A stretch of 63,228 bases of DNA, filler included, from Basidiobolus meristosporus CBS 931.73 (GCA_002104905.1; 3 parts of 3 records of this genome joined end to end with filler, not necessarily neighbours in it); one strand, 5' to 3'. Positions 1-27,210 are shown, counted from the first letter of the whole stretch. The notes: a model not told the origin generated them from the sequence alone. Numbers and translations: made by a program.

Positions 1-1141
1 GCTTGACACTGTTATGCAAACCATGGTGCAAGCCCAGGTCCATATCTATAGAGAAAGAGCCATGCTGCTTCTGCGCGTGGTGTGCGAGGTATTCTCAGCA
101 ACACATGGGCTGCAGGAGCTAACGATGGAGAATGGCGAAGTAGTAGCAAAGTTTAAAGGGAAGCCAGCTATGCGTAGGAATATAGACGAGCCTCTGGAGA
201 CTTCGCCTGCTTGTGAAGCCTTGACAGCCATTGTGTTTGAACCTAAAGCTAGCACATCCCAAGCTGGTTTGGGCCAATGAATAAATATCCTGTTGCAGAA
301 GGAACAGCGTTGTGTTTTTTAGAATTCACAAAGTGCTATAAAGGTGCGTGCCCAGCGAGGTATAAGGCATTCTCAGGTTGCTTAATCTGTAATACGTATA
401 GATAGTGTGTACGCAGTGTGTATAGATAGATGCACCACGTGACCGGTGTAACTTAAGTATCACAATATAGTGATTAAATAGTATGACGACTCAGCCACAA
501 TTGATTCAACATATTTATACCATAATATTGTATTCACTCCGAATATAAGCATTGGTGAGCGCGATCTAGGCGTAAATAAAGTGTCGTAGTTTCTGTTACA
601 CTGAGGCTATTAGTATTAAGTGCATACATAGTTTGTTCGGGGTATAAGGGTGGATGACAATATTGAGCGGTTACATAAGTATTGCCCATGTGTTCATCCC
701 TTGGTGGTATTGAAAGAATACGATAACCAGTATGTGATTGATAACGTAAAGATACACAAGAGGCATCTTTTGGTTGAGCGGCTAATCTAATATATCATGC
801 TGTTAAGCTTACTATTAATACTGCCATCATCTAAATTATGCAAGATAAAGGCCAATTTTTGAGGCGCTCTTTTGAGGCTCTCGCTGCATTTCTACCCATT
901 TCCGTTTACTAGAGAAATACTAGCCACTTTCTTATAACATAGTATAGGAATCTCTCTACCACGATTAGCATTGCTGTTGACAGAAATCACGTGTTTGTAC
1001 TTATATCATTTATATATATAAGAATCTCTCTGCTATGGCTAGTTTAGTCGCTTATTGCTGTGGAAGACAGAAGGAAAAACGGTTGTATGCTAGCTGCGGC
1101 GCTTATAAATATACTACATTACTCGACTGAGACCCATCAAT

Positions 1142-1249: not shown

Positions 1250-1670
1250 ATGTACAAACAACTTACCGCAGCTTGTGCTCTACTAATGGCCGTCAGTGCC
1301 TTTGGAAGTCCCGTGGATGTGTCAAGCACAAATCTCCGATAGGGATCCACAAAGCGGCCAAGTGGTGAAGAAGTTCTCGTCCAACAGGGAAGAGGATGCG
1401 CAGAATATTCGACACTACATCGATGGCATTCTCGGCCAGATGTCAAGGAATACGTTCGATCAGACACTCTCGGATAAGCAAGGAGTCGAGGAAGAGGAGG
1501 GCAATCCTGAAGAGGCCGAGCTATGGGGGAGATCCGGCGGATATGGGCGGCGAAGGGGCAGATACTGGGGACGAGGACGTTACGGTCGTTACGGTGGTTA
1601 TGGAGGTCGGTGGGGATATGGACGCTACGGGGGATATGGAGGGTATGGTGGATGCGACTGGGGTTGCTGA
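1250..1670 (+). pseudogene. Family A secreted GYRW-rich prepropeptide, frameshifted copy (A1)
   Basis: ATG at 1250 (MYKQLTAACALLMAVSAFG). A 17-nt deletion (gtagcgagcgcatccat, present in the 9191 copy) shifts the frame to TAG at 1340-1342. The rest of the gene is near-intact in the ORF-track frame 1296-1670, with a core variant WGRSGG. Confidence 0.9.
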
Positions 1671-1807
1671 GTAAACTCCTTAATAACAAGAATCAAGGCT
1701 TTCATTCACTCCAACAACACCACTTGTCTGTGTGCTTGAATAAAGTACCGTTGCATTTTATCTATTGATAGTGAATGGCCATGTGATTATGACTCTTATT
1801 GAGAATG

Positions 1808-2065
1808 CTAGTTGGCAGAGACTTTCACTGCTTCAACGGTCACTTCTTTTCCGTTGCTTCGAGGTAGTCGCAGCAAACCTGAACCTTTTCCTGTTGCAAT
1901 CTTGCAGAGAAAGGTACAGGATTGCTTTGGCGGAGGGGCTGGGTGGTCCGGGAGTGATGCTTGCGGTATCTACCGTTCCGCAGGTCACGTGCTGGCAAGA
2001 GCTGATATAGATATTCGGGTCAGCAGTGCCACGGTTAAGGAGCAGAGAACGGTATTGAATCGCAT
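1808..2065 (-). pseudogene. Family C secreted-protein pseudogene (C-psi1)
   Basis: Homologous to the intact gene at 7687-8097. Signal-peptide start MRFNTVLCSLTVALL is fused out of frame to exon 2 and stops after 26 codons. Confidence 0.8.
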
Positions 2066-3151
2066 TGTGTGTGTTTCAGCATTGAATTGAATACTGAAGA
2101 GGACTGTATAGAGCTATAAGGGGATAGGAACGGTAGGCAAGGAGAGATAGGTAGAGTTATCATAACAATGAAGGGGAATATTTGATCACTCCTGGGTGTA
2201 TCACCCTTACTTCAGTTTCTAGCCAAGCGAGTCCGTTCCTTGCTACTAAAATCACAAAAAGACTTGAATTACGTGAAGTACGGGTGCTACAACTTTATAG
2301 TATGAGTGGCTTGTTATAGTGTATGTGACTTGGGTTTCTATTTGCTGTAAGTGTAAAACCGGATTGAATGCATGCATATATATTCGTAGAGCGAAATAAC
2401 TCACTGGCTCGTGGTAAAATTTATTCAAAACACAAATCTTTATAGCCTTTCCATTACTGATAGTGGTGGTGAAAGACACGCCCGGTTGGTGCGTAGATAA
2501 GGTGAAAGGCTTTACCAGCTTAGGTATTTATCCCAAGTGACATGTAAGTATTACTGCTTAGTGAAAGGTTGCACGAGGTCGGGCTAGAGACGTGGGGACG
2601 AAACTGGAGAGATACGCGATAAGAGACGGGGATTAAGCCCTATTGAACCGCCATCTCTCCCTACAATGGCTGTCCCTCACCGCCTTCCATACGAGGATTC
2701 TGATTTAACCTCTCGTCTGCCCTACAACACGGATAAGATCTTGTGATCATCTGATCTTTGTGGAGAATATCTTATGAGCGCTTGCTTAATAACCATGATG
2801 GATATGGTAGATAAATGCACTCATGTTGGAGTATCTATCACATGAAGCTGGCAGCATTCTACTTGTCAAGTTATTACTGACTGATACTTATAAGGTTCAT
2901 TGCAGTCACACTCAAAAATTATTATCAGCACCTACGATGAACTTACTTACAAGCAAGCTATATGCACTGTCAGATAAGTACAGAAGTATACTAATTTCTA
3001 TATTATAGCATCCTAACTTTAAGCTTATTTATTCCTCGTTCAGCTGACCTATACTTGAGGATGTATTGCGTAACTGACTAAGAATAAACACTGGAGTTGG
3101 ATGTAGATAGATCGGATCAAGAGATGTTTTAATCAACCGTGCCACTCTTTA

Positions 3152-3421
3152 ATGTATATGAGTTGTGGCAGCAACGGAAGGGGATACGGTGATAGGATAC
3201 ATTGGTACATGGAGATGGCGAATGCCGACCAAGGAGTCGAGGAAGAGGAGGGCAATCCTGAAGAGGCCCAGCTATGGGGGAGATACGGCGGGTATGGGCG
3301 GTGGAGGGGCAGATACTGGGGACGAGGACGTTACGGTCGCTACGGTGGTTATGGAGGTCGGTGGGGATATGGACGCTACGGGAGATATGGAGGGTATGGT
3401 GGATGCGACTGGGGTTGCTGA
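3152..3421 (+). CDS. Leaderless chimeric family A ORF (89 aa); expression uncertain
   Basis: The 3' part (ADQGVEEEEG...CDWGC) is an A gene. The 5' part (up to ~3219) matches non-coding DNA upstream of B genes (cf. 5116-5175). No signal peptide. The core is intact. Confidence 0.45.
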   Translation: MYMSCGSNGRGYGDRIHWYMEMANADQGVEEEEGNPEEAQLWGRYGGYGRWRGRYWGRGRYGRYGGYGGRWGYGRYGRYGGYGGCDWGC

Positions 3422-3525
3422 ATAATAAGAGTCAAGGCTTTCATTCACTCCAGCAACGAATAAAGTACTGTCGCATTTTATCTATCGATAGTGAATGGTC
3501 ATATGTATAACTCTTATTGTAAATG

Positions 3526-3760
3526 CTACTTGGCGGAGACGCCTACTTCTTTTCCGTTATTTGGAAGCAGTCGCAACAATCCTGTTCCTTTTCCTGTTGC
3601 AGTCTTACAGAGAAGGGTACATGATTGCTTTGGCGGAGGTGCTGGATGGTCCAAAAGTGATGCTTGCGGTATCTACCGGTCACGTGTTAGCATGAGCCGA
3701 GGTTGATACGCGGGTTAGCAATGCCACGGTTAAGGAGCAGAGAACGGTATTGAATCGCAC
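3526..3760 (-). pseudogene. Family C pseudogene (C-psi2)
   Basis: Homology to 7687-8097. ATG is mutated to GTG, with internal TGA and TAA stops. Confidence 0.75.
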
Positions 3761-4175
3761 TGTGTGTGTTTTACCGTCAAATCGAATATTAAATACGATT
3801 GTATAGAGCTATAAGGGGATAAGCCCGGTTGGCAAGGAGAGACAGGCAGTGAAGGGGAATATTCTATTAGAGTACTTTTTTCAGTCTTGGGAGTGCGCAT
3901 ATGATGCTAATCCATCATTCTTACTTCAGTTTCTAGCCAAGAGAGCCCATTTCTTGCTACTAGTAACATAAAAAGACTTGAATCACTACAATTTTATCGT
4001 GTGTATGACTTGATATAGTGTGTGTGGCTTGGGTTTCTATACGTAAACAAATGACATAGTTGCTACAAGTGCAAAAGCTGATTAAATGCATGCATATATT
4101 CGTAGAGTGAAATAACTCATTGGAATCTCTATAGTCTTACCGTTAGGCATATGACTGATAGTGGTGGTGAAAGAT

Positions 4176-4219
4176 GATGCCCAGTTGATGCCCCGTTGAT
4201 GCCCCGTTGATGCCCCGTT
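4176..4219. repeat. 11-bp VNTR (GATGCCCCGTT) x4
   Basis: Four tandem units between GAAAGAT and GATGCGTAG. Confidence 0.95.
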
Positions 4220-5441
4220 GATGCGTAGATAAGCCTTTCATACGAGGATTCTGATTCAAAACACGGATTTTTGAGATTTTTCAGCTTTGTGGAGTGTATC
4301 TTTTGAGCGTTTGTTCAATAACCATGATGGCTATGGTAGATAAATACACTCATGTTAGAGTATCTACCGCATCAAGCTACTAGTCAAGTTATTACTTACA
4401 CTCTGATCACTGACTGACACTTAGACCATCATATCTGTGGTGTATAGAAGACCATAAGGTTCATTGTAGTCATTCTCAGCAGAAATACTCTGACCTCAGC
4501 ACTCACTGCTATGAACAGTTCTTCCTTCACTAAAGTCTCAATAGACTGTGATATTGACATGCTGGTATAGGTGATGCATGCTTTGTACAGTTCTCCATGG
4601 TTAAGTGCGGTAGGCCTCTACTTTCTTCATTTTAGACCCCACCAGAACCTTGGCTCGCTTCTAAATCAGTGTCGTACTAGTAGCATTCAGGTGCCATATC
4701 AATTATCGTATATTCTCCACAATATCCCGATATTTGAAGAGCTCATTTGAGATATTCACAAATAAGAATGAAAATGTGATCCTTGAGGCAATAAATGGTT
4801 GTCATTTAGTAACAATGACAGTACTTGAACCGCAACCCCTTCCAATATCAGCTAGCATGAACTTACAACAAGCTGTATGCACTGAGAATATATTAGATAA
4901 GTACACTAATTATTATATTGTCGCAGCCTAACTTGGAGCTTACTGAACCACCGTTAAGCTGAGCTATACACCAAATAAGTATATACTTCAGGATGTACTG
5001 CGGCAGGTTGACTGTATGCATAACCGACTATGATTAAATAATGGAGTTGGCTCAAGAGATGTCATCAACCATGCCGTTCTTTAGTAAATAGGACGATGTA
5101 AGGGGAGTTATGACATCAAAGGAAGGGGATAACGACGCTACAGTGACAGGATATATTGGTACATGGAGATGGCTGCAACTGGAGGTACAGACTCGTCAAC
5201 ACTCGGTTCACACAATCAATATCAACATATCTGCTAAACAAATGATCTTTTTAAGCTTTGAGTTGTGTTATGCGTGTTTGATTGAATGAAGAGCCACTAA
5301 ACAGCTTCTATTGAACGACCATATGGATCACCCGCAGCGCTTCCCACTGAAGGCAGAGGTGAAGTTGAGTGTCTTTAATCAGCTTCTGCTGTGCGGGTAT
5401 ATATATTCATAATCGGCTCGAGTGCTTCATTCAGATTCACA

Positions 5442-5861
5442 ATGTACAAACACTTCTCCATCACCTTTGCTCTCCTAATTGCCTCATGTGCAGTGGCAAT
5501 TCCTGTGCAGCCAGAAGTAACCAATGTAGCAAGTGCTTCCATCTCCATCCGGGACCCACAAAGCGGAAAAATGATAACACAATTCCAATCCACAAAAGAC
5601 GAAGATGCTCGTGCCCTTCTTGACGACATATTCGGTCAAATTTCAGGCGGTGGGTTGGCAAATGAACAAGTATCTCCTACAAGTGAAGACAATGACTCTG
5701 AAGAGGCCGAGCTTTGGGGCAGATATGGTGGCTATGGAAGGTGGGGGAGCAGATACTGGGGACGGGGACGTTACGGTCGCTATGGTGGCTACGGAGGCCG
5801 ATGGGGATATGGGCGCTACGGGGGATATGGTGGCTATGGTGGATGCGACTGGGGTTGCTAA
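5442..5861 (+). CDS. Family B secreted GYRW-rich prepropeptide (B1), 139 aa
   Basis: ATG in the conserved ATTCACAATG context. Hydrophobic signal MYKHFSITFALLIASCAVA, acidic linker, core LWGRYGGYGRWGSRYW...GGCDWGC. TATATA upstream and AATAAA downstream. Confidence 0.9.
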   Translation: MYKHFSITFALLIASCAVAIPVQPEVTNVASASISIRDPQSGKMITQFQSTKDEDARALLDDIFGQISGGGLANEQVSPTSEDNDSEEAELWGRYGGYGRWGSRYWGRGRYGRYGGYGGRWGYGRYGGYGGYGGCDWGC

Positions 5862-6060
5862 TACACTACATCCTTACGTTAAATAAACATCATAATGTCA
5901 ATGCTTCAATCTAAACCTCATCGCAATTAATAGAAGCCGCTCAGTGATGCTTACCAAGCTGCGGTAGGGAGAGAAAGTCAGATATGTGTATAGATAAGGT
6001 GGATGTCTAGGCAAAGATAAGTCTTATTGCAGTTTGGCAGTCGATTATCTTCCTAAATGG

Positions 6061-6130
6061 TGCCAATCTTTACCTTCAAATGCTGACAATTTTTATCTTC
6101 AATGCTGTCAATCTTTACTTTTCAATGGTG
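6061..6130. repeat. Three imperfect ~23-bp direct repeats in the B-A intergenic region
   Basis: Unit ~CAATYTTTAYCTTYAATGC repeated three times. Also present at ~14016-14085. Confidence 0.7.
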
Positions 6131-6491
6131 TGCTGTTAGTAAAGTGATTTTTTTCGCTTCATATTTGCCTAATCTTCCATGAATGCCGTCTATAGCTTTC
6201 TTATATTCATGTGGTGCTGTCGACCTGGACTGTACGAACCATTTTACTTTACGTTCTGCTTTCTAGAGTATCTAATGGTCTGACTACTACTAATATGACG
6301 ATTAATTAGTATATACTCATGGTGACACTATTCTAGAGGCTCTTATTGTATCTTCCTAATGCCTGTAGAATAGATGCAAAATATAATATATCGTTCGTCC
6401 GAAACCCATCAATTTCGCGAAGCTTCCTAGATGTGATGTCTATAAACCTCCATCTTGGCCAAAAGCTGTATTGAAGTATTCAACATTCACA

Positions 6492-6941
6492 ATGTACAAA
6501 CAACTTACCGCAGCCTGTGCTCTACTAATGGTCGTCAGTGCCTTTGGAGCTCCCGTGGATGTGTCAAACACAAATGTAGCGAGCGCATCCATCTCTGATA
6601 GGGACCCACAAAGCGGCCAAGTGGTGAAGAAGTTCTCGTCCAACAGGGAGGAGGATGCGCAGAATATTCGACACTACATCGATGGCATTCTCGGCCAGAT
6701 GTCAAGGAATACGTTTGATCAGACTCTCTCGAGCAAGCAAGGCGCCGATCAAGGAGTTGAGGAAGAGGAGGGCAATCCAGAAGAGGCCGAGCTATGGGGT
6801 AGATACGGCGGATATGGGCGTCGGAGGGGCAGATACTGGGGACGAGGACGTTACGGTCGCTACGGTGGTTATGGAGGTCGGTGGGGGTATGGACGCTACG
6901 GGGGATATGGAGGGTATGGTGGATGCGACTGGGGTTGCTGA
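6492..6941 (+). CDS. Family A secreted GYRW-rich prepropeptide (A3), 149 aa
   Basis: Intact ORF from the ATG at 6492 (the ORF track extends it to an upstream TTG). Signal peptide, pro-domain, EEEEG linker and CDWGC core are all present. Confidence 0.9.
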   Translation: MYKQLTAACALLMVVSAFGAPVDVSNTNVASASISDRDPQSGQVVKKFSSNREEDAQNIRHYIDGILGQMSRNTFDQTLSSKQGADQGVEEEEGNPEEAELWGRYGGYGRRRGRYWGRGRYGRYGGYGGRWGYGRYGGYGGYGGCDWGC

Positions 6942-7070
6942 GTAAACTCCTTAATAACAAGAATCAAGGCTTTCATTCACTCCAACAACACCACTTGTCT
7001 GTGTGCTTGAATAAAGTACCGTTGCATTGTATCTATCGATAGTGAATGGCCATGTGATTATGACTCTTAT

Positions 7071-7351
7071 TTAGAGTGATAGCTGGCAGAGACCCTCACT
7101 GCTCCAAAGGTCACTTCTTTTCCGTTCTTCGCGATGTGTGTCTCGGGTTGTTTGGAGGTAATCGTAGCAATCCTGTTCCTTTTCCTGTTGCAATCTTGCA
7201 GAGAAGGGTACGGGATCGCTTTGGCGGAGGTGCTGGGCGGTCCGGAAGTGATGCTTGCGGTATCTACCGGTCACGTGTTGGCATGAGCCGAGGCTGGTAT
7301 GCAGGTTAGCAGTGCCACGGTTAAGGAGCAGAGAACGGTTTTGTATCGCAT
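7071..7351 (-). pseudogene. Family C pseudogene (C-psi3) with restored frame and one internal TGA
   Basis: Reads MRYKTVLCSLTVALLTCIPASAHANT*PVDTASITSG...GAVRVSASYHSK. An 8-nt deletion puts the exon-2 sequence back in frame behind a single TGA. Confidence 0.75.
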
Positions 7352-7686
7352 TGTGTGTGTTTCACCGTTGAATCGAATACTGAAGAGGACTGTATAGAGC
7401 TATAAGGAGATAAGCACGGTTGGCAAGGAGAGACAGGCAGAGCTACCATAACAATGAAGGGGAGCATCACCCTTACTTCAGTTTCTAGCTAAGAGAGCCC
7501 GTTCCTTGCTACTAGTATCGCCACGGTGGATACACTCCATTCATCTTTTGCTCAGAATGATGTGTAGGCATATTCTAGGCTTTCGTTCACTAGTCTGTTA
7601 CAGTTGCTCTTTCATTCTGGCTGTGTATATCTAATGGGATGCATTCTTTATCACTCCTGGCTAAACAATGCGGTTTATTGAGGATG

Positions 7687-8097
7687 CTAGCTGACAGATA
7701 CTCTTACTGCTCCAACAGTCACTTCTTTTCCGTTCTTCGCGATAGGCACCTCGAGTTGTTTGGATGTTATAGCAGCTATCCTGTTCCTGCGATTGTAACA
7801 ATCTTGCAGAGAAGGATACAGGACGGCTTGAGCAGAGGTACTGGGAGATTCAGGGGTGATGCTGGAGTAGGTCACACGTTGGCATGAGCCAGCCGAGAAT
7901 GGTAGTTGTTGTGCAGTATCTTCAGGAGTATTCACCAACTCTACATTGTAAGTATTTGGTTAGTAAGGCTCACTGGTTGCGGCTAGTTGGGTTATATACT
8001 GATACATACTTAGTAACGCACTAGAGGATTGTGCTGAAGTTGTCGTGCCGGCTAGTAGTGCCATGGTCAAGGAGCAGAAAACGGTACTGAATCGCAT
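7687..8097 (-). CDS. Family C small secreted protein, 113 aa, two exons (8097-8010 and 7940-7687), not called by the ORF track
   Basis: Exon 1 encodes MRFSTVFCSLTMALLAGTTTSAQSSSALL. The 69-nt intron (8009-7941) has GTATGT, a TACTAAC branch point (7965-7959) and TAG. Splicing joins exon 1 in frame to the 83-aa ORF 7938-7687. Confidence 0.85.
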
Positions 8098-8756
8098 TGT
8101 GTGTGCCTCTGTGTGTATGCCTGATGAATAAGGTGAACATTACAAGCGATTTTATAGGAAATTAGCCCGGCTTGTAAGGAGAGACAGGCTGAGCTACCAT
8201 GATGAAGCGGAATATTCTTTATTATTCACCAAATTCGCTTTGGGCTAAGCACTTTTTTTAAAGGAGAAACCATCGAACTCAAGTGATGATCCTTGTATTG
8301 TTCGATGACTAGTGTTAGCCTGCATATGTGGCATGGATGCGTTGCCTGCTCGCTTCCATTAGTATCGTAACGCCGAATATGGTGAGTGCGATCTAGGCGT
8401 AAATAAAGTGTTGTAGTTTCTGTTACACTGAGGCTTTAAATTTTGAGTGCATGCTTAGTATATAGGCATTGCCCATTTGTAGCCCACTCATTCATCTCCT
8501 GATGAAGGAATCAGATGGTGGTGATGACTTCTGGTGAAGAACGGCAAATGGTGGTGGTCAAAGAAAAAGATGACCAGTATGGGATTGATAACGTAAAATA
8601 TACACGAGGGGAGGCTCCGTTTATTCTTTGGTGTTCACCATGCGCAAGTACTTTTCCATCGCTCTAATACTTTTTAATGTGACAAGTGTGTCCATCTCTT
8701 CTCCAAAGTCGGGAAACGGTGTGTAGGAAGAAGGTGCTCGCACCAGAGAGGGCAGG

Positions 8757-8830
8757 TGACGAGGTCGTTATGGTCACTTCGGGGACTATGATGGTCGCTG
8801 GGAACTTGGAGGGTTTGCTTGAGCTGCTAA
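8757..8830 (+). pseudogene. Relic of an older, diverged GYRW-core paralogue
   Basis: Reads *RGRYGHFGDYDGRWELG, collinear with GRGRYGRYGGYGGRWGYG, and ends in ...CTGCTAA like the B genes. Confidence 0.55.
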
Positions 8831-9190
8831 TTTAATACATCATGCTGTTAAGCTTACTACTAATATTGCGATCATCCACAACTCTAAATCATGCAAAATA
8901 AATGCCAATTTTTGAGGCTCTCTTTTGAGGCTCTCGCTGTTTATCTACCCATTTCCGTTTACGAGATAAACACTTGCCACTTTCATATAACATAGTATAG
9001 AAATCTCTATACCACGACTAGTGTTGTTGTTAACAGAAATCGAGTGTTTGTACTTTGGCTGCGGTGGTTGCCTCCGAAATATACTACATCATTTGACTGA
9101 AGCTTCCTAGATGCGATATCAATCAACCTCCATCTTGTATGTGTATATAAAGACTGGTGCTGAGCTTTATTTGAGTATTCAACATTCACA

Positions 9191-9640
9191 ATGTACAAAC
9201 AACTTACCGCAGCTTGTGCTCTACTAGTGGCCGTCAATGCCTTTGGAAGTCCCGTGGATGTGTCAAGCACAAATGTAGCGAGCGCATCCATCTCCGATAG
9301 GGATCCACAAAGTGGCCAAGTGGTGAAGAGGTTCTCGTCCAACAAGGAGGAGGATGCGCAGAATATTCGACACTACATCGATGGCATTCTCGGCCAGATG
9401 TCAAGAAATACGTTCGATCAGACCCTCTCGGATAAGCAAGACGCCGACCAAGATGTCGAGGAAGAGGAGGGCAATCCAGAAGAGGCCCAGCTATGGGGGA
9501 GATACGGTGGATATGGGCGGCGGAGGGGCAGATACTGGGGACGAGGACACTACGGTCGCTACGGTGGTTATGGAGGTCGATGGGGATATGGACGCTACGG
9601 GGGATATGGATGGTATGGTGGATGCGACTGGGGTTGCTAA
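9191..9640 (+). CDS. Family A secreted GYRW-rich prepropeptide (A4), 149 aa
   Basis: Intact ORF with TATA box at 9144-9151. Core variants GRGH and GWY. Confidence 0.9.
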   Translation: MYKQLTAACALLVAVNAFGSPVDVSSTNVASASISDRDPQSGQVVKRFSSNKEEDAQNIRHYIDGILGQMSRNTFDQTLSDKQDADQDVEEEEGNPEEAQLWGRYGGYGRRRGRYWGRGHYGRYGGYGGRWGYGRYGGYGWYGGCDWGC

Positions 9641-9768
9641 ATAATAAGAATCAAGGCTTTCATTCCACTCCAACAACACAGACTTGTCTAGTGTGCTTGA
9701 ATAAAGTACCGTTGCATTGTATCTATCGATAGTGAATGGCCATGTGATTATGACTCTTATTGAGAATG

Positions 9769-10037
9769 CTAGTTGGCAGAGACTCTCACTGCTCCAACGG
9801 TCACTTCTTTTCCGTACTTCGCGATGTGTATCTCGAATTGTTTAGAGGTAATTGTAGCAGTCCTGTTCCTTTTACAGTTGCAATCTTGCAGGGAAGGGTA
9901 CAGGATTACTTTGGCGGAGGTGCTGGGTGGACCGGAAGTGATGCTTGTGGTATCTACCGGTTTGCAGGTCACGTGTTGACATGAGCTGATGTTGACACGC
10001 TGGTTAGCAGTGCCACGGTTAAGGAGTAGAGAACGGG
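9769..10037 (-). pseudogene. Family C pseudogene (C-psi4), 5'-truncated
   Basis: The exon-2-like frame is open (ORF 9769-9972). The start region is lost at ~10037. Confidence 0.75.
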
Positions 10038-11259
10038 GCTAGGGTTTATTTATCACATCAAGCTGGCAGCATTCTACTTGCCAAGTTATTACTGACTGAT
10101 ACTTATATAGACGATCATAAGGTTCATTGTAGTCATACCCAAAATATTATTATCTCTTCAGTATTCTCAACAGCAGTGCAGCGGCCTCAGCACTTGCTGT
10201 TATGAACAGTTTCCTTCACAGGTATGGCTAAAGTCTCAATATACTAAGACATTGGCATGCTGGCATAGGTGATGCAGGCTTTGTACGGCGCTCCAGCTGT
10301 CTTTCAGAGAGGCTCCTACTGCTTAGCTGATTACAGCACACTAGCATAAATAGGCCATGTTTAATCATTATTTCTTGGTACTCGTAGAAAATACCAACAC
10401 GTGACTTGCTTTGTACTCCCACTGCAGGTAGCTACCAGATATACAATTGTACTGCATAGGACTCTACTTCGTATAGTAATTTGGTGTTATTTTGAACACT
10501 GATAAGCAAGAGTAGGAACTCTCCATTGCTTTAAAGCTACTGGTAAAACATAAGCTCAGTAAACTTGTTCTAGGCAGCATTCCAACTCATATTTTCGCAA
10601 TAAATAACCTTGTAGCATATAGAATGGTGCTGATAGCTCCTTGATCCATACTGTTGGCTATTGGAGTGAGCAGACTTTGTAGTGGAGTTAGCCTGCAGTA
10701 GGGATTTTGAACTTACATTGACTCCTTGGTGAGCAGTTCTTTATGTAGTTGATGATTGAAAGTTACTTACAGGCTGCCCAGGTGCAATAGGCCTCTGCTT
10801 TCCTCATTTAAATATCACCAGAACCCTTGGTTTACTGGACACTTCTGAACCAGTATTGCACTATCAGCTTCAGGTACCATATCAAGTGCCAAACATTCTT
10901 CACAATGCTTTAATATTTGAGATATTTACAACAGGCACTATATAACTAAGAATGAAAAAGTAGTAGCCCGAATACTTGAGGCAGCTATCATTATTTGAGC
11001 CGCAATCCCTGCCAATATTACCTACAATGAACTTACTTACAAGCAAGCTATAAGCACTGTTAGATAAGTACAGAAGTATACTAATTTCTATATTATAGCA
11101 TCCTAACTTTAAGCTTATTTATTCCTCGTTCAGCTGACCTATACTTGAGGATGTATTGCGGCAGGTTGACTGTATGCGTAACCGACTAGGAATAAACACT
11201 GGAGTTGGATGTAGCTAGATCGGATCAAGAGATGTTTTAATCAACCGTGCCACTCTTTA

Positions 11260-11511
11260 ATGAATATGAGTTGTGGCAGCAACGGAAGGGGATACGGTGA
11301 TAGGATACATTGGTACATGGAGATGGCGAATGCCGACCAAGGAGTCGAGGAAGAGGAGGGCAATCCTGAAGAGGCCGAGCTATGGGGGAGATACGGCGGG
11401 TATGGGCCGTGGAGGGGCAGATACTGGGGACGAGGACGTTACGGTCGTTACGGTGGTTATGGAGGTCTGTGGGAATATGGAGGCTATGGTGGATGCGACT
11501 GGGGTTGCTGA
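11260..11511 (+). CDS. Leaderless chimeric family A ORF (83 aa), degenerating
   Basis: Same fusion junction as 3152-3421. The core has an in-frame deletion and R>P, R>L and G>E changes. Confidence 0.35.
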   Translation: MNMSCGSNGRGYGDRIHWYMEMANADQGVEEEEGNPEEAELWGRYGGYGPWRGRYWGRGRYGRYGGYGGLWEYGGYGGCDWGC

Positions 11512-11670
11512 ATAAACTCCTTACTAATAAGAGTCAAGGCTTTCGTTCACTCCAGCAACGCAGCTTTTCTGTGTGCTTGAATAAAGTACTGTCGCATTTT
11601 GTCTATCGATAGTGAATGGCCCTGAGTATAATTCGATGGGATGTATTCTTTATAACTCTTGTCGTGAATG

Positions 11671-11913
11671 CTAGTTAGCAGAGACCCCTACTTCTTTTCG
11701 GTTATTTGGAGGTACTCGCAACAATCCTGTTCCTTTTCCTGTTGCAATCTTACAGAGAAGGGTACATTATTGCTTTGGCGGAGGTGCTGGATGGTCCGGA
11801 AGTGATGCTTGCGGTATCTACCGGTCTGCAGGTCACGTGTTGGCATGAGCCGAGTTTGATACGCGGGTTAGCAGTGCCACGGTTAAGGAGCAGAGAACGG
11901 TATTGAATCGCAC
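11671..11913 (-). pseudogene. Family C pseudogene (C-psi5)
   Basis: GTG start, frameshift and two CAA>TAA stops relative to the intact C gene. Confidence 0.75.
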
Positions 11914-12258
11914 TGTGTGTGTTTTACCGTTAAATCGAATATTAAATACGATTGTATAGAGCTATAAGGAGATAGGCACTGTTGGCAAGGAGAGACAGGC
12001 AGAATTACCATGACAATGAAGGGGAGTATTCTATTAGAGTACTTTTTTCAGTCTTGGGAGTACGCATATGATTACTTCAGTTTCTAGCCAAGAGAGCCCG
12101 TTCCTTGCTACTAGTAACATAGAAAGACTTCAAAACGTCATAGTTGCTATAAGCGCAAACCTGATTGAATGCATGCATATAATCGTAGAGTGAAATAACT
12201 CATTGAAATCTCTATAGTCTTACCGTTGGGCATATGACTGATAGTGGTGGTGAAAGAT

Positions 12259-12291
12259 GATGCCCAGTTGATGCCCCGTTGATGCCCCGTT
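12259..12291. repeat. 11-bp VNTR x3
   Basis: Same unit and flanks as 4176-4219. Confidence 0.95.
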
Positions 12292-13418
12292 GATGCGTAG
12301 ATAAGCCTTTCATACGAGGATTCTGATTCAAATACGTCTGCCTCAAACACGGATTTTGACCAGGACAAGACCTTGTGACCATCTGAGCTTTGTGGAGTGT
12401 ATCTAACCATGACGGCTATGGTAGATAAATACACTCATGCTGGAGTATCTATCACATCAGTACTATCATTACTTACACTCTGATCACTGACTGACACCTA
12501 CACCATCATATCTTTGGTGTATAGAAGATCATAAGGTTTGTCGTAGTCATTTTCACAGAACCATTATCTCCTCAGTATTCTCAGCAGAAATACTCTGACC
12601 TCAGCACTCACTGCTATGAGCAGTTCTTCCTTCACTAAATATCAAGTACCCTATATTCTCCACAATATCAAGTACCCTATATTCTCCACAATATCCCAAT
12701 ATTTGAAGATATTTGCAACAGATACTGTACAACTAAGAATGAAAATGGAATGCTTGAGGCTATCAATGGTTGTCATTTAGTAATAATGATCGCAGCTAGT
12801 TCTCAGTGCTTGAACCGCAGCCCCTTCCAATATCAGCTAGCATGAACTTACAACAAGCTATATGCACTGAGAATCTATTCGATAAGTACACTAATTTTTA
12901 TATTATCGCAGCCTAACTTGGAGCTTACTAATTCCGCTTACCATACACCGACCAAGTATATTCTTCAGGATTTACTGCGGTAGGTTAACTGTATGTGTAA
13001 CCGACTGGGAAGAAATACTGGAGTTATCTCAAGAGATGTCATTAATCATGCCATTCTTTAGTAAATATGATGATATAAAGGGAGTTATGGCATCAACGGA
13101 AGGGGATAACGACGCTACAGTGACAGGATACATTGGTACATGGAGATGGCTGCAACTGGAAGTTCACACAATCAATATCAACATATGGCTAACCTGCAAC
13201 ATATCTGCTAAACAAATGATCTTGTGAAGCTTTTCGTTGTGTTATGCGTGTTTGATTGAATGAAGAGCCACTAAACAGTTTCTATTGAACGATCGTATGG
13301 ATCACCCGCAGCGCTTCTCACTGAAGGCAGAGGTAAAGTTGAGTGTCTTTAATAAGCTCCATCATCAGCTTCTGCTATGCGGGTATATATACTCATAATC
13401 AGCTCATTCAGATTCACA

Positions 13419-13838
13419 ATGTACAAGCACCTCTCCATCCCCTTTGCTCTCCTAATTGCCTCATATGCAGTGGCAACTCCTGTGCAGCCAGAAGCAACCA
13501 ATGTAGCAAGTGCTTCCATCTCCATCCGGGACCCACAAAGCGGCAAAATGATAACACAATTCCAATCCGCAAAAGACGAAGATGCTCGCGCCATTCTTGA
13601 CGACATATTCGGCCAAATGTCAGGCGGTGGGTTGGCAGATGAAGAAGTGTCTCCTACAAGTGAAGACACTGACTCTGAAGAGGCCGAGCTTTGGGGTAGA
13701 TATGGTGGCTATGGAAGGTGGGGGAGCAGATACTGGGGACGAGGACGTTACAGTCGCTATGGTGGCTACGGAGGCCGATGGGGATATGGGCGTTACGGGG
13801 GATATGGTGGCTATGGTGGATGCGACTGGGGTTGCTAA
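13419..13838 (+). CDS. Family B secreted GYRW-rich prepropeptide (B2), 139 aa
   Basis: Intact ORF from the ATG at 13419. Close paralogue of B1. Confidence 0.9.
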   Translation: MYKHLSIPFALLIASYAVATPVQPEATNVASASISIRDPQSGKMITQFQSAKDEDARAILDDIFGQMSGGGLADEEVSPTSEDTDSEEAELWGRYGGYGRWGSRYWGRGRYSRYGGYGGRWGYGRYGGYGGYGGCDWGC

Positions 13839-14302
13839 TGCACTACATCCTTACGTTTAATAAATATCATAATGACAATGCTCATCGTAATTAATCAGTG
13901 ATGTTTACCAAGCTGCAGTATGGAGAGAAAGTCGGATATGTGTATGGATAAGGTGGATGTCTAGGCAAAGATAAGTCTTATTGCAGTTTGGCTGTCAATT
14001 ATCTTCATAAATGGTGCCAATCTTTACCTTTAAATGCGGTCAATTTTTACCTTCAATGCTGTCAATTTTTACCTTTTAATGGTGTACTGTTAGTAGTCAT
14101 TTTTTTTCGCATGATAACACTACTCTAGAAGCTCTTATTGTATCTTCCTAATGCCTGTAGAATAGATGCAAAATATAATATATCGTTCGTCCGAAACCCA
14201 TCGATTCCGTGAAGCTTCCTAGATGCGATATCAATCAACCTCGATCTTGTATCTGTATATAAAGGCTGGTGCTGAGCTTTATTGGAGTATTCAACATTCA
14301 CA

Positions 14303-14752
14303 ATGTACAAACAACTTACCGCAGCTTGTGCTCTACTAATGGTCGTCAGTGCCTTTGGAAGTCCCGTAGATGTGTCAAGCACAAATGTAGCGAGCGCATC
14401 CATCTCCGATAAGAACCCGCAAAGCGGTCAAATGGTGAAGAAGTTCTCGTCCAACAAGGAAGAGGATGCGCAGAATATTCGACACTACATCGATGGCATT
14501 CTCGGCCAGATGTCGAGGAATACGTTTGATCAGACTATCTCGAGCAAGCAAGGCGCCGACCAAGGAGTCGAGGAAGAGGAGGGCAATCCTGAAGAGGCCC
14601 AGCTATGGGGGAGATACGGTGGATATGGGCGGCGAAGGGGCAGATACTGGGGACGAGGAGGTTACGGTCGCTACGGTGGTTATGGAGGTCGGTGGGGATA
14701 TGGACGCTACGGGGGATATGGAGGGTATGGTGGATGCGACTGGGGTTGCTGA
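14303..14752 (+). CDS. Family A secreted GYRW-rich prepropeptide (A6), 149 aa
   Basis: Intact ORF from the ATG at 14303, with TATA box at 14256-14263. Confidence 0.9.
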   Translation: MYKQLTAACALLMVVSAFGSPVDVSSTNVASASISDKNPQSGQMVKKFSSNKEEDAQNIRHYIDGILGQMSRNTFDQTISSKQGADQGVEEEEGNPEEAQLWGRYGGYGRRRGRYWGRGGYGRYGGYGGRWGYGRYGGYGGYGGCDWGC

Positions 14753-14880
14753 ATAATAACAAGGATCAAGGCTTTCATTCACTCCAACAACACAGCTTGT
14801 CTGTGTGCTTGAATAAAGTATCGTTGCATTTTATCTATCGATAGTGAATGGCCATGTGATTATGACTCCTATTGAGAATG

Positions 14881-15138
14881 CTAGTTAGCAGAGACTCTCA
14901 CTGCTCCAACGGTCACTTCTTTTCCGTAGTTTCGAGGTAATCGCAGCAAACCTGAACCTTTTCCTGTTGCAATCTTGCAGAGAAAGGTACAGGATTGCTT
15001 TGGCGGAGGTGCCGGGTGGTCCGGAAGTTATGCCTACGGTGTCCAATGGCCCGGCAGTCACGTGTTGCCATGAGCCAAGGTTGATACGCAGGTTGGCAGT
15101 ACCATGTTTAAGGAGGAGAGAACGGTATTGAGTCGTAT
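14881..15138 (-). pseudogene. Family C pseudogene (C-psi6)
   Basis: Homology to family C. The start codon is lost (ATA). Confidence 0.7.
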
Positions 15139-15409
15139 TGTGAGTACTTCACCGTTGAATCGAATATTAAAGAAGATTGTGTAGAGCCATAAGGGGATAT
15201 GCAGAGTTACTAAGATAATGAAGGGGAATAATATACAACTTTATCGTGTGTATGACTTGTTATAGTGTGTGTGGCTTGGGTTTCGATACGTAAACAAATG
15301 GCATAGTTGCTTTGATTGAATGCATGCATATAATCGTAGAGTGAAATAACTCATTGAAATCTCTATAGTCTTACCGTTGGGCATATAACTGATAGTGGTG
15401 GTGAAAGAT

Positions 15410-15616
15410 GATGCCCCGTTGATGCCCCGTTGATGCCCCGTTGATGCCCCGTTGATGCCCCGTTGATGCCCCGTTGATGCCCGTTGATGCCCCGTTGATG
15501 CCCCGTTGATGCCCCGTTGATGCCCCGTTGATGCCCCGTTGATGCCCGTTGATGCCCCGTTGATGCCCCGTTGATGCCCCGTTGATGCCCCGTTGATGCC
15601 CCGTTGATGCCCCGTT
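15410..15616. repeat. 11-bp VNTR, ~19 units
   Basis: 17 units of 11 bp plus 2 of 10 bp. Confidence 0.95.
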
Positions 15617-16842
15617 GATGCGTAGATAAGCCTTTCATACGAGGATTCTGATTCAAAATCGTCTGCCTCAAAACACGGATTTTGACCAGGACAAGATCTT
15701 GTGACCATCTGAGCTTTGTGGAGTGTATCTAACCATGACGGCTATGGTAGATAAATACACTCATGATGAAGTATCTATCACATCAAGCTACTAGTCAAGT
15801 TATTACTTACACTCTGATCACTGACTGACACTTACACCATCATATCTCTGGTGTATAGAAGACCATAAGGTTCATTGTAGTCATTCTCAGCAGAAATACT
15901 CACTTACTGCTATTCCCAACTCTTCCTTCACAGGTATGGCTGAAGTCTCAATATACTGAGAGATTGGCAGGCTTTGTACAGTACTCCAGCAGTCTTTCGG
16001 AGATGCTTTCACTATTCAGCTCACTACAGCACACTAAGCCTAAACATGACATCAGCCAAGCAACAAGCATTATTTCTTGGTACTCATAGTAAATTCCAAC
16101 ACATGACTTGCTTTGTATTCCCACTTCAGGTAGCTATAGGATATACATAAGACTCTGCTTCATACAGTATGTTGGTGCTATGTTGACTATTGCTAAGTGA
16201 ATATATGCTCTACTGGTAAAATATAAAGTCGGTAAACTTATTCCTGTCCGCACAATAGATACCTTTGTAGCCTAAAGCATGTTGGTGGACTTTGTGGTAT
16301 ATGTTTTCTACAATGTCCTAATATTTGAACACGCTTGCTACAACTCATTGGAGATATTCACAAATGAGACTATACAACTAAAAATGATCACTTAATAAAT
16401 GGACGTTGTTTGATAAGAATCCTTCAATACTTGAACCAGCTTATACGAATATCAAACGAACTATATGCACTACAAGGGAATATATTATACAAGTACAGAA
16501 GTACAATAATCGTTATATTTCGTATACCACCGTTCAGCTGAGCTATACACTGACTCCATATATACTTCAGGGCGTGCTGTGGCATGAGTAACCGGCTAGG
16601 AATAAATACTGGAGTTAGATGTAACTAGATAGGTTTATCAAGCTCCATCATCATTCCATTCCTGAAGACACCGACTCTGATGGCAGCAACGGAAGGAGAT
16701 TAGGACGCTACGTTTCTGGGGCACATTGGGACATGGAGATGGCTGCAACTGGAGTCAAAATATGGTCCACACAATCAATAGCGGTATCCTCAATATGTGG
16801 CTAATATGTACAATCCGCTCAACTCCTTCATTCAGATTCAAA

Positions 16843-17020
16843 ATGCACTAGCACTTCTTCATCACCATTACTCTCTTAATCGCTTCGTGTGCAGTGGCGA
16901 TTCCTGTGCAGCCAGAAGTGACCAATATAGCAAGTGCTTCCATCTCCATCCGGGACCCACAAAGCGGCAAAATGATATCACAATTTCAATCCACAAAAGA
17001 CGAGGATACTCGCGCCATTC
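16843..17020 (+). pseudogene. Family B pseudogene, 5' fragment (B3)
   Basis: ATG CAC TAG (stop at codon 3). Homology to B ends at the duplication junction. Confidence 0.85.
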
Positions 17021-17294
17021 TATTGTGAGTACTTCACCGTTGAATCGAATATTAAAGAAGATTGTGTAGAGCCATAAGGGGATATGCAGAGTTACTAAGA
17101 TAATGAAGGGGAATAATATACAACTTTATCGTGTGTATGACTTGTTATAGTGTGTGTGGCTTGGGTTTCGATACGTAAACAAATGGCATAGTTGCTTTGA
17201 TTGAATGCATGCATATAATCGTAGAGTGAAATAACTCATTGAAATCTCTATAGTCTTACCGTTGGGCATATAACTGATAGTGGTGGTGAAAGAT

Positions 17295-17491
17295 GATGCC
17301 GTGATGCCCGTTGATGCCCGTTGATGCCCGTTGATGCCCCGTTGATGCCCCGTTGATTTGATGCCCCGTTGATGCCCCGTTGATGCCCCGTTGATGCCCC
17401 GTTGATGCCCCGTTGATGCCCCGTTGATGCCCCGTTGATGCCCCGTTGATGCCCCGTTGATGCCCCGTTGATGCCCCGTTGATGCCCCGTT
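17295..17491. repeat. 11-bp VNTR, ~18 irregular units
   Basis: Duplicated VNTR with several short or broken units. Confidence 0.9.
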
Positions 17492-18717
17492 GATGCGTAG
17501 ATAAGCCTTTCATACGAGGATTCTGATTCAAAATCGTCTGCCTCAAAACACGGATTTTGACCAGGACAAGATCTTGTGACCATCTGAGCTTTGTGGAGTG
17601 TATCTAACCATGACGGCTATGGTAGATAAATACACTCATGATGAAGTATCTATCACATCAAGCTACTAGTCAAGTTATTACTTACACTCTGATCACTGAC
17701 TGACACTTACACCATCATATCTCTGGTGTATAGAAGACCATAAGGTTCATTGTAGTCATTCTCAGCAGAAATACTCACTTACTGCTATTCCCAACTCTTC
17801 CTTCACAGGTATGGCTGAAGTCTCAATATACTGAGAGATTGGCAGGCTTTGTACAGTACTCCAGCAGTCTTTCGGAGATGCTTTCACTATTCAGCTCACT
17901 ACAGCACACTAAGCCTAAACATGACATCAGCCAAGCAACAAGCATTATTTCTTGGTACTCATAGTAAATTCCAACACATGACTTGCTTTGTATTCCCACT
18001 TCAGGTAGCTATAGGATATACATAAGACTCTGCTTCATACAGTATGTTGGTGCTATGTTGACTATTGCTAAGTGAATATATGCTCTACTGGTAAAATATA
18101 AAGTCGGTAAACTTATTCCTGTCCGCACAATAGATACCTTTGTAGCCTAAAGCATGTTGGTGGACTTTGTGGTATATGTTTTCTACAATGTCCTAATATT
18201 TGAACACGCTTGCTACAACTCATTGGAGATATTCACAAATGAGACTATACAACTAAAAATGATCACTTAATAAATGGACGTTGTTTGATAAGAATCCTTC
18301 AATACTTGAACCAGCTTATACGAATATCAAACGAACTATATGCACTACAAGGGAATATATTATACAAGTACAGAAGTACAATAATCGTTATATTTCGTAT
18401 ACCACCGTTCAGCTGAGCTATACACTGACTCCATATATACTTCAGGGCGTGCTGTGGCATGAGTAACCGGCTAGGAATAAATACTGGAGTTAGATGTAAC
18501 TAGATAGGTTTATCAAGCTCCATCATCATTCCATTCCTGAAGACACCGACTCTGATGGCAGCAACGGAAGGAGATTAGGACGCTACGTTTCTGGGGCACA
18601 TTGGGACATGGAGATGGCTGCAACTGGAGTCAAAATATGGTCCACACAATCAATAGCGGTATCCTCAATATGTGGCTAATATGTACAATCCGCTCAACTC
18701 CTTCATTCAGATTCAAA

Positions 18718-19058
18718 ATGCACTAGCACTTCTTCATCACCATTACTCTCTTAATCGCTTCGTGTGCAGTGGCGATTCCTGTGCAGCCAGAAGTGACCAA
18801 TATAGCAAGTGCTTCCATCTCCATCCGGGACCCACAAAGCGGCAAAATGATATCACAATTTCAATCCACAAAAGACGAGGATACTCGCGCCATTCTTGAC
18901 GACATATTCGGCCAAATGTCAGGCGGTGGGTTGACAAATGAACAAGTGAAGACACTGACTCTGAAGAGGCCGAGCTTTGGGGTAGATATGGTGGCTATGG
19001 AATACAGGGGAGTAGATACTGGGGACGAGGACGTTACGGTCGTTATGGTGCTTACGGA
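18718..19058 (+). pseudogene. Family B pseudogene (B4)
   Basis: Stop at codon 3, a 13-nt deletion between AAGTG direct repeats, and a core truncated before CDWGC. Confidence 0.85.
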
Positions 19059-19297
19059 TTCAATTGAAGTGTTTCTTTTTCGCAGCATTTTTACCAGCCG
19101 CGTTAGTGGAAACACACATACTTACTTCATCAGTATGCTTGTCCCTATCTTACTAACAACAGTATACTAGAGCTAGCACAAAGCTTCCTAATGCTTGTAA
19201 CATAGATTCGACTGGAACCCATCAATTCTGCGAAGTGTCCTAGATGCAATGTCTATTAACCTGGTTTAGTATATAAATCGAGTGTTCAACATTCACA

Positions 19298-19663
19298 ATG
19301 TACAAACAACTTACCGCAGCTTGTGCTCTACTAATGGTCGCCAGTGCCTTTGGAAGTCCCGTGGATGCGTCAAGCACAAATCTCCGATAGAAACCCACAA
19401 AGCGGCCTAGTGGTGAAGAAGTTCTCGTCCAACAGGGAAGAGGAAGCGCAGAATACTCGACACTACATCGATGTTATTCTCAGCCAGATGTCAAGGAATA
19501 CGCTCGATCAGACTCTCTGGAGCAATCAAGGAGTCGAGGAAGAGCAGGGTAATCCAGAAGAGGCCCAGCTAGGGGGGAGATACGGCGGAGGAGCAGATAC
19601 TGGGGACGAGAAGGTTATGGAGGGCGTTGGGGATATGGGCGTTACGGGGGATACGGAGGATGC
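19298..19663 (+). pseudogene. Family A pseudogene (A7)
   Basis: Carries the same 17-nt and 12-nt deletions as A1, plus several core deletions. Confidence 0.85.
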
Positions 19664-21689: not shown

Positions 21690-22400
21690 TCTGATGGGAT
21701 TTGAAGGTATTCAGCTGTTATTTTTTCTTCAAGTTGTTGGTTGCAATTTTTGTTTGAAGTAGTAAGCAGCTGTTAACCAAACCTGGTATGAATGCCAGTT
21801 GGCCTCTCCTCCTCATACAGAATACATGTGCTGGTCATTCCAACAGGTAGTGCCTGATATATAAAGAGGTGTATATATAGAAAACTTGAATTGAGCCAAC
21901 ATCATGGTGGTATTTTGCTGACCATTTCAAAGTCCTTTCTGTTTGGCAAGAGTGCTATGGTGCATATGTGGGGGACACAGGAGTGGCAGCTGATATTACT
22001 AATTCTAATATTTCTGAGCTTCACATATATATTTGCAATCTACTTTACTGCAGGTAGGTTGTAAACCTAGTATATCACATACTAGGCCACTTTACTGTAT
22101 TCAGCAAACTAACTTCAGCTGGGAGACAATAGGTGTGTATTTGTAGGCATATATATGATCATATATGTAGGGAAGCAGTGGGCCTTCTCTGTTCACTGAT
22201 GCATGGCAAACTGACTCTGCAGTACTTGAGGTCTACTTTTGAGTTGCATAGCTTCAATTGTTGCCTTGGACAAAACCAATGCAACTACATATTTCTATAG
22301 CTAACTTCCTTAGGAGTTGCAAACACAACTTACTGCATCTCCAATTGAATCCTTGCAGCAGACAGATACAATCATTGAGTGCTCAGCACAACTGATGATG
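21690..22400 (+). mobile_element. Highly degenerate reverse transcriptase-RNase H relic (DIRS/Ngaro- or LTR-type)
   Basis: Motif remnants in the expected order: WDLK (~21695), MPVGLSSSYRI (~21792), GVYIENL for YxDD (~21870), LFTDA (~22192), DKTNATTY (~22270). Frames are broken throughout. Confidence 0.45.
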
Positions 22401-27000: not shown

Positions 27001-27210
27001 TCTGCAAATTGATATCAACAAAAAATTGTTTATTCTTCAGCACTATTGACTAGGCACTCCAATACAATGGAAGGAAATGACACAATAAGCCAGAAGAAAC
27101 TATAAAGCCCCCTTCTTCGCTGGGTGATATACATTGAAATTACTTTGGAGAAATTTGCACTAGTATTGTTGAAACACGTTGGCGTTTTAACCTTTATTAC
27201 ACCACTGCAC

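Follow-up and report, generated by a model that had tools for sequence, protein, structure and literature searches.

The window considered here, a stretch of 63,228 nucleotides (nt) of DNA from the fungus Basidiobolus meristosporus CBS 931.73, begins with a complete scaffold (1-27,409; coordinates throughout are those of the whole stretch) that carries an array of related genes between positions 1250 and 19,659. Judged from its sequence, the array appears to consist of real, compact, intronless genes of a secretory prepropeptide family restricted to Basidiobolus. It is one branch of a larger Basidiobolus superfamily, in which a shared N-terminal module is joined to apparently swappable cationic cores. 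By analogy with precursors in other organisms, it looks most like an antimicrobial-peptide (AMP) precursor family of a kind not described in fungi. The observed array is far beyond chance, and the interpretation offered by a first-pass annotation of this DNA proves largely right, its proposal of selection for copy number excepted.

The family copies were located by tblastn with the two intact types, A and B, and then by pairwise DNA alignment. There are 11 copies and one 48-nt core remnant, all on the + strand and all oriented toward the telomere. The first-pass annotation had described 11 collinear copies, five of them intact, two leaderless fusions and four pseudogenes, a count that both methods uphold; the remnant (8755-8802, 77% identity to A codons 116-131) is additional. 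Each intact copy is a complete prepropeptide open reading frame (ORF). B1 (5442-5861) and B2 (13419-13838) encode 139 amino acids (aa); in B1 the signal peptide spans about aa 1-19 and the core aa 91-139, with SEEAE closing the pro-region. The three intact A copies encode 149 aa each. In the first of these (6492-6941) the signal peptide corresponds to 6492-6548, the pro-region to 6549-6791, the PEEAEL junction to 6777-6794, the 49-aa core to 6792-6938 and the stop codon to 6939-6941. The second lies at 9191-9640 and the third at 14303-14752; on three other scaffolds, the A copies found after B are positional orthologues of the third.

The remaining six copies are truncated or broken. Both leaderless fusions, F1 (3152-3421) and F2 (11260-11511), show homology to A from codon 85 onward (from 3224 to the stop in F1, from 11332 in F2), preceded by unrelated sequence that has no signal peptide; the F2 core is shorter by an 18-nt in-frame deletion, which is one hexapeptide unit. 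The broken A-type copy at 1250-1670 has a 17-nt frame-shifting deletion at codon 28 that splits the signal peptide from the remainder, and it has also lost 12 nt in frame at codon 83; its core is otherwise intact, and a leaderless ORF (1296-1670) runs uninterrupted across it. A 5' fragment of B (16843-17021), lying within a 1.9-kb tandem duplication, holds codons 1-60 only. The B pseudogene at 18718-19058 has lost 13 nt at codon 75 as well as its 3' end, with homology stopping at reference nt 354 of 420. The A pseudogene at 19298-19659 has the same 17-nt and 12-nt deletions as the copy at 1250-1670, plus 13-nt and 18-nt deletions in the core. Could an intron or alternative exon give the leaderless copies a signal peptide? 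This is unsupported; the upstream part added by the public gene model P0011 has no signal peptide.

The intact genes share one layout: a predicted signal peptide, an N-terminal pro-module, an acidic spacer devoid of Lys and Arg, and a cationic C-terminal core of 49 residues. The predicted signal peptide has a Lys in its n-region, Kyte-Doolittle values of 1.8-2.7 over residues 4-19, a helix at residues 4-17 in the AlphaFold2 model and small residues at -3/-1 (A-F-G or A-V-A). The pro-module displays an NVASxSxS motif followed by a predicted helix. After the signal peptide, the pro-region has no Cys, as read from the alignment, and the acidic linker terminates in EEAE or EEAQ. Counted from its Leu, the core is 49 aa long. 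Degenerate hexapeptide units (GRY/GGY) make it up and a C-x3-C pair closes it, the terminus being CDWGC in each of the window's five intact genes. The B1 core contains 21 G, 10 Y, 8 R, 5 W, 2 C, 1 L, 1 S and 1 D, and no K. Exact counts and alignment thus agree with what the first-pass annotation had listed for the B1 composition, the linker end, the core length and the CDWGC terminus, and the secretory prepropeptide layout it proposed is borne out by the sequence. In A and B the core has a charge of +7 to +9 and the pro-region one of -7 to -12, and the precursor minus its signal peptide is roughly net neutral (0 to -5). AlphaFold2, run with an 11-sequence alignment, gave a mean confidence (pLDDT, predicted local distance difference test) of 46.5, with only the signal helix and one further helix (residues 53-83); the core is predicted to be disordered.

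Gene signals and substitution patterns both bear on whether these frames are used. All five intact genes in the window have a TATA-like box at -35 to -51 and an AATAAA 21-69 nt past the stop (-44 and +21, respectively, in B1), and the start context ATTCACA-ATG is common to A and B genes. When A and B cores are compared by the Nei-Gojobori method, there are 16-17 synonymous and 4-5 non-synonymous differences, with a synonymous rate (dS) of 0.6-0.76, a non-synonymous rate (dN) of 0.04-0.06 and a dN/dS ratio (omega) of 0.05-0.10. By the same method omega is about 0.2 in the pro-region, where dS is saturated, and 0.5-1 in the signal peptide. The core is therefore the most constrained part of the precursor within A and B, and its near-invariance, which the first-pass annotation had noted, reflects purifying selection. 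Variant-codon counts across the genomic copies give a non-synonymous to synonymous ratio of 0.09-0.25 for the core. Read in the other two frames, the same nucleotide differences give ratios of non-synonymous to synonymous proportions (pN/pS) of 1.6 and 6.35, and the Gly/Tyr/Arg/Trp frame is thus the translated, constrained one. On six scaffold ends there are 17 intact ORFs (12 A and 5 B), every one with a core of exactly 49 aa, despite a slippage-prone 18-nt repeat. In-frame core deletions are found in six copies; four of these are leaderless or broken, and two (L006:7491 and L008:4106) have an undeleted 5' end.

The +1 frame is also open over each core, with ORFs at 1396-1674, 6655-6945, 9354-9644 and 14466-14756, and it is the core frame used by the public models P0002, P0007, P0009 and P0012-P0015. 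With a pN/pS of 1.6 in that frame, these models are mis-framed.

Do these proteins belong to a described family? The first-pass annotation did not recognise one and suggested protein and profile searches of fungal proteomes; searches of this kind gave significant matches confined to Basidiobolus, both in a word-indexed search of 5.8 billion proteins and in an exhaustive phmmer search of 1.84 billion representatives, and brought up no characterised family. A search with the core only, at E<=10, found B. meristosporus alone. In Pfam, the five intact proteins have no match at threshold and, at E<=1, only two sub-threshold chance matches. One of the five reached 12.6 bits (E 0.22) against PF07172, the plant glycine-rich protein (GRP) family, for which the gathering threshold is 30. 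PF07172 proteins likewise combine a signal peptide with a Gly-rich C-terminal part, but the present family is not a member. No NCBIfam match at E<=1 was obtained for A, B or the related proteins P0044 and P0016, and a PDB profile search gave chance matches only (E>0.1). In the ESM Atlas, the whole protein reached 0.83 to an oomycete 'glycine-rich protein', which is below a meaningful level, and the pro-region alone had no usable match. An Rfam scan of the 27,409-bp scaffold detected no RNA family, and a literature search with core strings and Basidiobolus terms yielded nothing on this family. It can thus be regarded as uncharacterised, being without a match in Pfam, NCBIfam, PDB or the literature.

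Two apparent leads were set aside. UniRef automatically names P0044 an 'RSAM-associated Gly-rich repeat protein', a label that is rejected because the NCBIfam scan of this protein gives no match. The profile search added weak, low-complexity matches outside Basidiobolus; one is a glycine-rich protein of the chytrid Synchytrium endobioticum (P0027), which has a signal, an acidic stretch ending in AEAEQ and a Gly/Tyr/Arg/His tail. Its profile E value of 5.6e-3 is too weak to call it a homologue; it is a possible analogue and may be convergent.

Within Basidiobolus, the profile search revealed relatives of the array. A P0016-type subfamily of B. meristosporus has a shorter Gly/Tyr core with a CYDWDC end. 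Two further types in this species carry (WGRGR)n cores of 34-39 aa with 13-16 Arg and 7-9 Trp. At least 13 genes of the (WGRGR)n kind form a tandem array with a period of about 1.2 kb at about 4200-20200 of locus L004 (MCFE01000402.1, 27-47 kb), a chromosome-internal position inside an 81-kb scaffold. As this array adjoins housekeeping genes, the superfamily is not purely subtelomeric. Even with junction and core left out of the comparison, the Gly/Tyr and WGRGR types have homologous pro-modules (hhalign probability 95.4%, E 1.8e-8, about 20% identity). The junction [ND][PS]EEA[EQ]L-WGR is nearly invariant across subfamilies, continues as WGR[YFW]G and is the best-conserved segment of the precursor; no Lys or Arg occurs in the 17-47 residues upstream of its EEA[EQ]L part. 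Spacer acidity tracks core charge in four subfamilies, with core/spacer values of +7/-9, +9/-8, +13/-14 to -17 and +15/-22. In Basidiobolus ranarum there are three genes with a signal peptide, pro-module and acidic tail (L001 3001-3348, L010 6946-7305 and L011 1699-2058), and no cationic core is present anywhere on their 3-9-kb contigs. These core-less genes are either the ancestral stand-alone form or genes that have lost the core.

Some details of the relatives may be added. Paralogues of the P0016 type on other scaffolds (P0020, P0022 and P0024) are decaying just after the junction: one model ends right after PEEAEL and the others drift from the core after WG. Type-2 (WGRGR)n members have an extra Lys/His-rich insert. 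Their precursors might be taken to hold two cargo peptides, as there is a second PEEAQL followed by a basic stretch, but this is rejected since the segment aligns by hhalign with the helix of the A/B pro-module. The public annotation merges several genes of the L004 array into models of 394-579 aa. Together with the wrong-frame models, these merged ones represent a systematic mis-annotation in a reference genome that the family exposes.

What might such precursors do? The reading favoured here, held at slightly less than even probability, is that they yield a secreted, proteolytically released cationic defence peptide with an antimicrobial or competitive role. It is favoured because of the layout, which resembles that of cathelicidin and frog AMP precursors, and because the core compositions match known AMP classes. 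The precursor would enter the secretory pathway, and the acidic spacer would neutralise and solubilise the cationic core in transit. An endoprotease recognising the [ND][PS]EEA[EQ]L-WGR junction would then free the core; speculatively, the pair of a P1 Leu and a P1' Trp might suit a pepsin-type aspartic protease. The two Cys may form a small C-terminal disulfide loop, and the free Arg/aromatic/Gly peptide would act extracellularly, by being membrane-active or by binding polyanions. The many near-identical copies could supply dosage.

By architecture, the family would work like the animal precursors that pair a pro-region with a cationic peptide. Cathelicidins have a conserved pro-region and heterogeneous cationic C-terminal peptides, including the Trp-rich indolicidin, and are encoded by clustered genes (PMC3487008). 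The Basidiobolus family resembles them in its signal peptide, conserved pro-region, differing cationic C-terminal peptides, Trp/Arg-rich cargo and clustered genes: homologous pro-modules precede radically different cores, and there are tandem arrays here and at L004. This is a likeness and not membership. Pfam found no cathelin-like pro-domain (cystatin-like, with four Cys) in the five intact proteins, in keeping with a pro-region that is Cys-free after the signal. Cathelicidin genes have four exons whereas these are intronless, an elastase site is replaced by the EEAEL-WGR junction, and the host is a fungus. Cathelicidin peptides are released by proteolysis, and those of the present family would be too.

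Balancing of charge between propiece and mature peptide has been described for frog AMPs and defensins (PMC7106915). Precursors of anuran skin AMPs (preprodermaseptin and the brevinin-temporin type) consist, as here, of a signal peptide, an acidic propiece and a cationic C-terminal peptide with balanced charge. The correspondence is in charge and order only, that is, in architecture and not homology, and no sequence homology to anuran AMP precursors was found. Anuran precursors have a Lys-Arg prohormone-convertase site before the mature peptide, whereas the residues before the core here are E-E-A-E/Q-L, and anuran mature peptides are hypervariable, whereas the core is conserved within the A/B subfamily. 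The putative C-terminal disulfide loop is reminiscent of the 'Rana box' of frog peptides.

In Caenorhabditis elegans, Gly/Tyr-rich secreted peptides encoded in tandem clusters are antifungal effectors (PMC2453101). The nematode NLP-29 cluster and the caenacins (CNC) are similar to this family in being small Gly/Tyr-dominated peptides in tandem clusters that change by duplication, but the Basidiobolus proteins differ in that their acidic pro-region is long and conserved and their C-terminus carries a Cys pair. No nematode protein, and hence no relative of nlp-27..34 or cnc, is among the matches of the whole-protein, profile and core-only searches. Arg/Trp-rich peptides are a classical AMP class (abstract of PMC6017362), and the sister (WGRGR)n cores have the Arg/Trp composition of indolicidin, tritrpticin and synthetic (RW)n. 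These cores, which lie outside the window and are known from genes alone, are much longer (34-39 aa) and have regular Gly-spaced repeats. Fungal ribosomally synthesized and post-translationally modified peptides (RiPPs) of the Kex2-repeat/dikaritin kind are a further point of comparison. Their precursors hold several core repeats, each between dibasic KR/RR sites, and UstYa (DUF3328)-type or tyrosinase genes lie close by; here there is one core per precursor, no Lys or Arg before the junction and no Pfam family in ten non-family ORFs (>=60 aa) of the scaffold. The family thus belongs to none of the named groups with which it was compared: PF07172, cathelicidins, NLP/CNC, Kex2-repeat/dikaritin peptides or the NCBIfam Gly-rich model.

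Animals are known to make linear cationic peptides of the Gly/Tyr/Arg or Arg/Trp kind that carry an anionic propiece. To our knowledge, the fungal AMPs described are cysteine-stabilised defensin-like or AFP/PAF-type proteins. If the genes are expressed and processed as proposed, an early-diverging, gut-associated fungus would have converged on a design of conserved pro-region plus swappable cationic warhead. New natural peptide scaffolds would follow, a 49-mer with a C-x3-C loop and a natural (WGRGR)n, and the junction would point to a new secretory processing specificity. A bolder version of the defence-peptide proposal, rated somewhat less probable than the favoured reading itself, is that Basidiobolus evolved its own cathelicidin-like delivery, with the conserved pro-module, the near-invariant junction and a dedicated protease exporting interchangeable cationic peptides for microbial warfare in dung, soil or the herptile gut. 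The exported cargo would then be of two kinds: Gly/Tyr 49-mers that close in a disulfide loop at the C-terminus, and (WGRGR)n peptides. Such a system would constitute the first linear, non-defensin host-defence-type peptide family in fungi, with dozens of genes at chromosome ends.

Several points weigh against a defence peptide. Transcription, secretion, cleavage and activity are each read from sequence only, and AlphaFold2 yields no confident structure. The mature domains of animal AMPs are usually hypervariable; the core here is the most conserved part within A/B, a pattern no less suited to a structural or dosage role. The junction is without a dibasic Kex2-type site, and we know of no protease for [ND][PS]EEA[EQ]L-WGR. 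A core with 8-10 Arg would be short-lived in a trypsin-rich gut. The core-less homologues of B. ranarum indicate that the 'pro-region' may have its own function.

Could the product be a material rather than a weapon? The strongest rival, though itself rather unlikely, is an extracellular adhesive or matrix peptide, for example the glue of the capilliconidial adhesive tip or part of a spore-wall matrix. Its sticker-and-spacer core of Arg, aromatic residues and Gly would phase-separate through cation-pi and pi-pi contacts and age or cross-link via Tyr and Cys; the acidic block would keep the core soluble until cleavage, or drive self-coacervation of a net-neutral diblock. A 77-aa GRP of tick cement offers a precedent: its regularly spaced Arg and aromatic residues have been shown to make it phase-separate and age as an adhesive (PMC11794139). 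Like tick GRP77, the family has a signal peptide and then a disordered Gly-rich sequence with periodic, Gly-separated Arg and Tyr/Trp, a similarity of composition and predicted disorder only; it differs in its separate acidic block, conserved junction and denser Arg and aromatic residues. The roughly net-neutral, polyampholyte-like precursor and the predicted disorder of the core fit a glue, and strong purifying selection on many near-identical copies fits bulk production of a material. The invariant junction, however, suggests the release of a small peptide, and the WGRGR subfamilies have no Tyr or Cys for cross-linking. Adhesive capilliconidia are a genus-wide trait of Basidiobolus, yet no core of the GY or WGRGR type was found in the B. 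ranarum proteome, a weak point as that assembly is fragmented. Should an adhesive be the right reading, spore adhesion would become accessible to genetics through these genes, which would also supply a minimal natural Arg/aromatic coacervate. The core-less genes at three B. ranarum loci, complete with the N-module only, give some weight to another proposal: the N-module may itself be a working small secreted protein, with the cationic tail left uncleaved as a tether to anionic surfaces such as the fungus' own wall, host mucus, nucleic acids or bacterial envelopes. Purifying selection on the pro-region (omega about 0.2) and homology of the module across subfamilies are in line with this, but it is improbable; the core is more constrained than the N-module, the spacer charge follows that of the core and the junction is the best-conserved segment, observations that together suggest the core to be the cargo.

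A conserved leader, a conserved junction and a variable core are also features of RiPP precursors, and one UniRef auto-name (that of P0044) contains the term 'RSAM-associated'. The precursors might then be RiPP-like, or encode a signal or pheromone, with leader and junction serving as recognition sites for tailoring enzymes whose genes lie at other places in the genome. The NCBIfam scan fails to support the auto-name, no enzyme gene is present in the 27 kb (the ten scanned ORFs being without a Pfam family), and, unlike dikaritin-type fungal RiPPs, the precursors are without Kex2 sites and repeated cores; at least 39 distinct gene products would be unusual for a pheromone. Hence this proposal is given still less credence than a functional N-module. 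Least probable of all is that the ORFs are non-functional passengers of a selfish subtelomeric duplicon, open by chance in low-complexity DNA. Whole blocks, pseudogenes included, have indeed been copied between chromosome ends, about half of the 35 copies are broken, and alternative frames over the core are open as well. Nevertheless, the low omega of the core (0.05-0.10) and the frame-specific nature of the constraint make a passenger role unlikely. Coding sequences are 93-95% identical between copies, as against 83-88% for high-scoring segment pairs (HSPs) of about 1 kb that span gene and flanks, and promoter and poly(A) motifs are kept between A and B despite the saturated dS.

The array lies in a true subtelomere, as the first-pass annotation had proposed. 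A (TTAGGG)33 telomere at 27211-27409 (+ strand) has its G-rich strand running 5' to 3' to the scaffold end, which is therefore a true chromosome end; the last family copy ends 7.5 kb from it, in agreement with the distance given by the first-pass annotation. The tract is perfect apart from one unit, at 27294-27300, that is one G short (TTAGG). Between array and telomere is an AT-richer, gene-poor region (19700-27210, GC 36-39%), which is paralogous, at 92-95%, to the scaffold end L007 and contains no family copy and no Pfam-bearing ORF. Five other scaffold ends align with the sequence as far as about 27,000, apart from gaps at 23-25 kb, where coverage falls to about half; the long HSPs are 84-97% identical. 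These other paralogous loci sit at contig ends and have no telomere assembled in them.

Copies have turned over within these blocks. There are 35 copies or fragments on six scaffold ends, about half of them broken, and the fast turnover suggested earlier is borne out as birth and death. The protein collection has 28 distinct A-type and 11 distinct B-type sequences, all from CBS 931.73, on at least 12 scaffolds. A module of A, fusion, B and A occurs twice in the window, about 8 kb apart, and recurs on other scaffolds. In a maximum-likelihood tree, the A copies directly after B on four scaffolds form one clade (support 100/99), and the positions within a block must thus have diverged before blocks were copied from one chromosome end to another. 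The 17-nt deletion does not mark a single lineage, as the tree places its carriers in different clades, which points to a mosaic or gene-conversion history. Subtelomeric blocks are 85-96% identical between chromosome ends and carry pseudogenes along with intact genes. Selection for copy number, which the first-pass annotation had inferred, is thus possible but not shown, since copies multiply within whole blocks of this sort and amplification may be a by-product of subtelomeric duplication. Whichever function applies, block duplication at chromosome ends would build lineage-specific secreted repertoires in a non-Dikarya fungus.

The distal part of the array shows a direct tandem duplication of 1.885 kb (15136-17021 and 17021-18896, 99.3% identity) that carries the B-type 5' fragment; if not an artefact of assembly, this duplication is very recent. 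A 23-bp unit is present about three times in the short spacer between a B stop and the next A start (6055-6127 and 14008-14085). Kept in both blocks, it could serve to regulate the A gene that follows. An 11-bp minisatellite, TGATGCCCCGT, is found at 4175-4224, 12258-12296, 15409-15621 and 17302-17496, with 3.5-4.5 copies in the proximal blocks and about 19 in the two distal ones, where it generates spurious long ORFs on the - strand (15241-15708 and 17248-17583).

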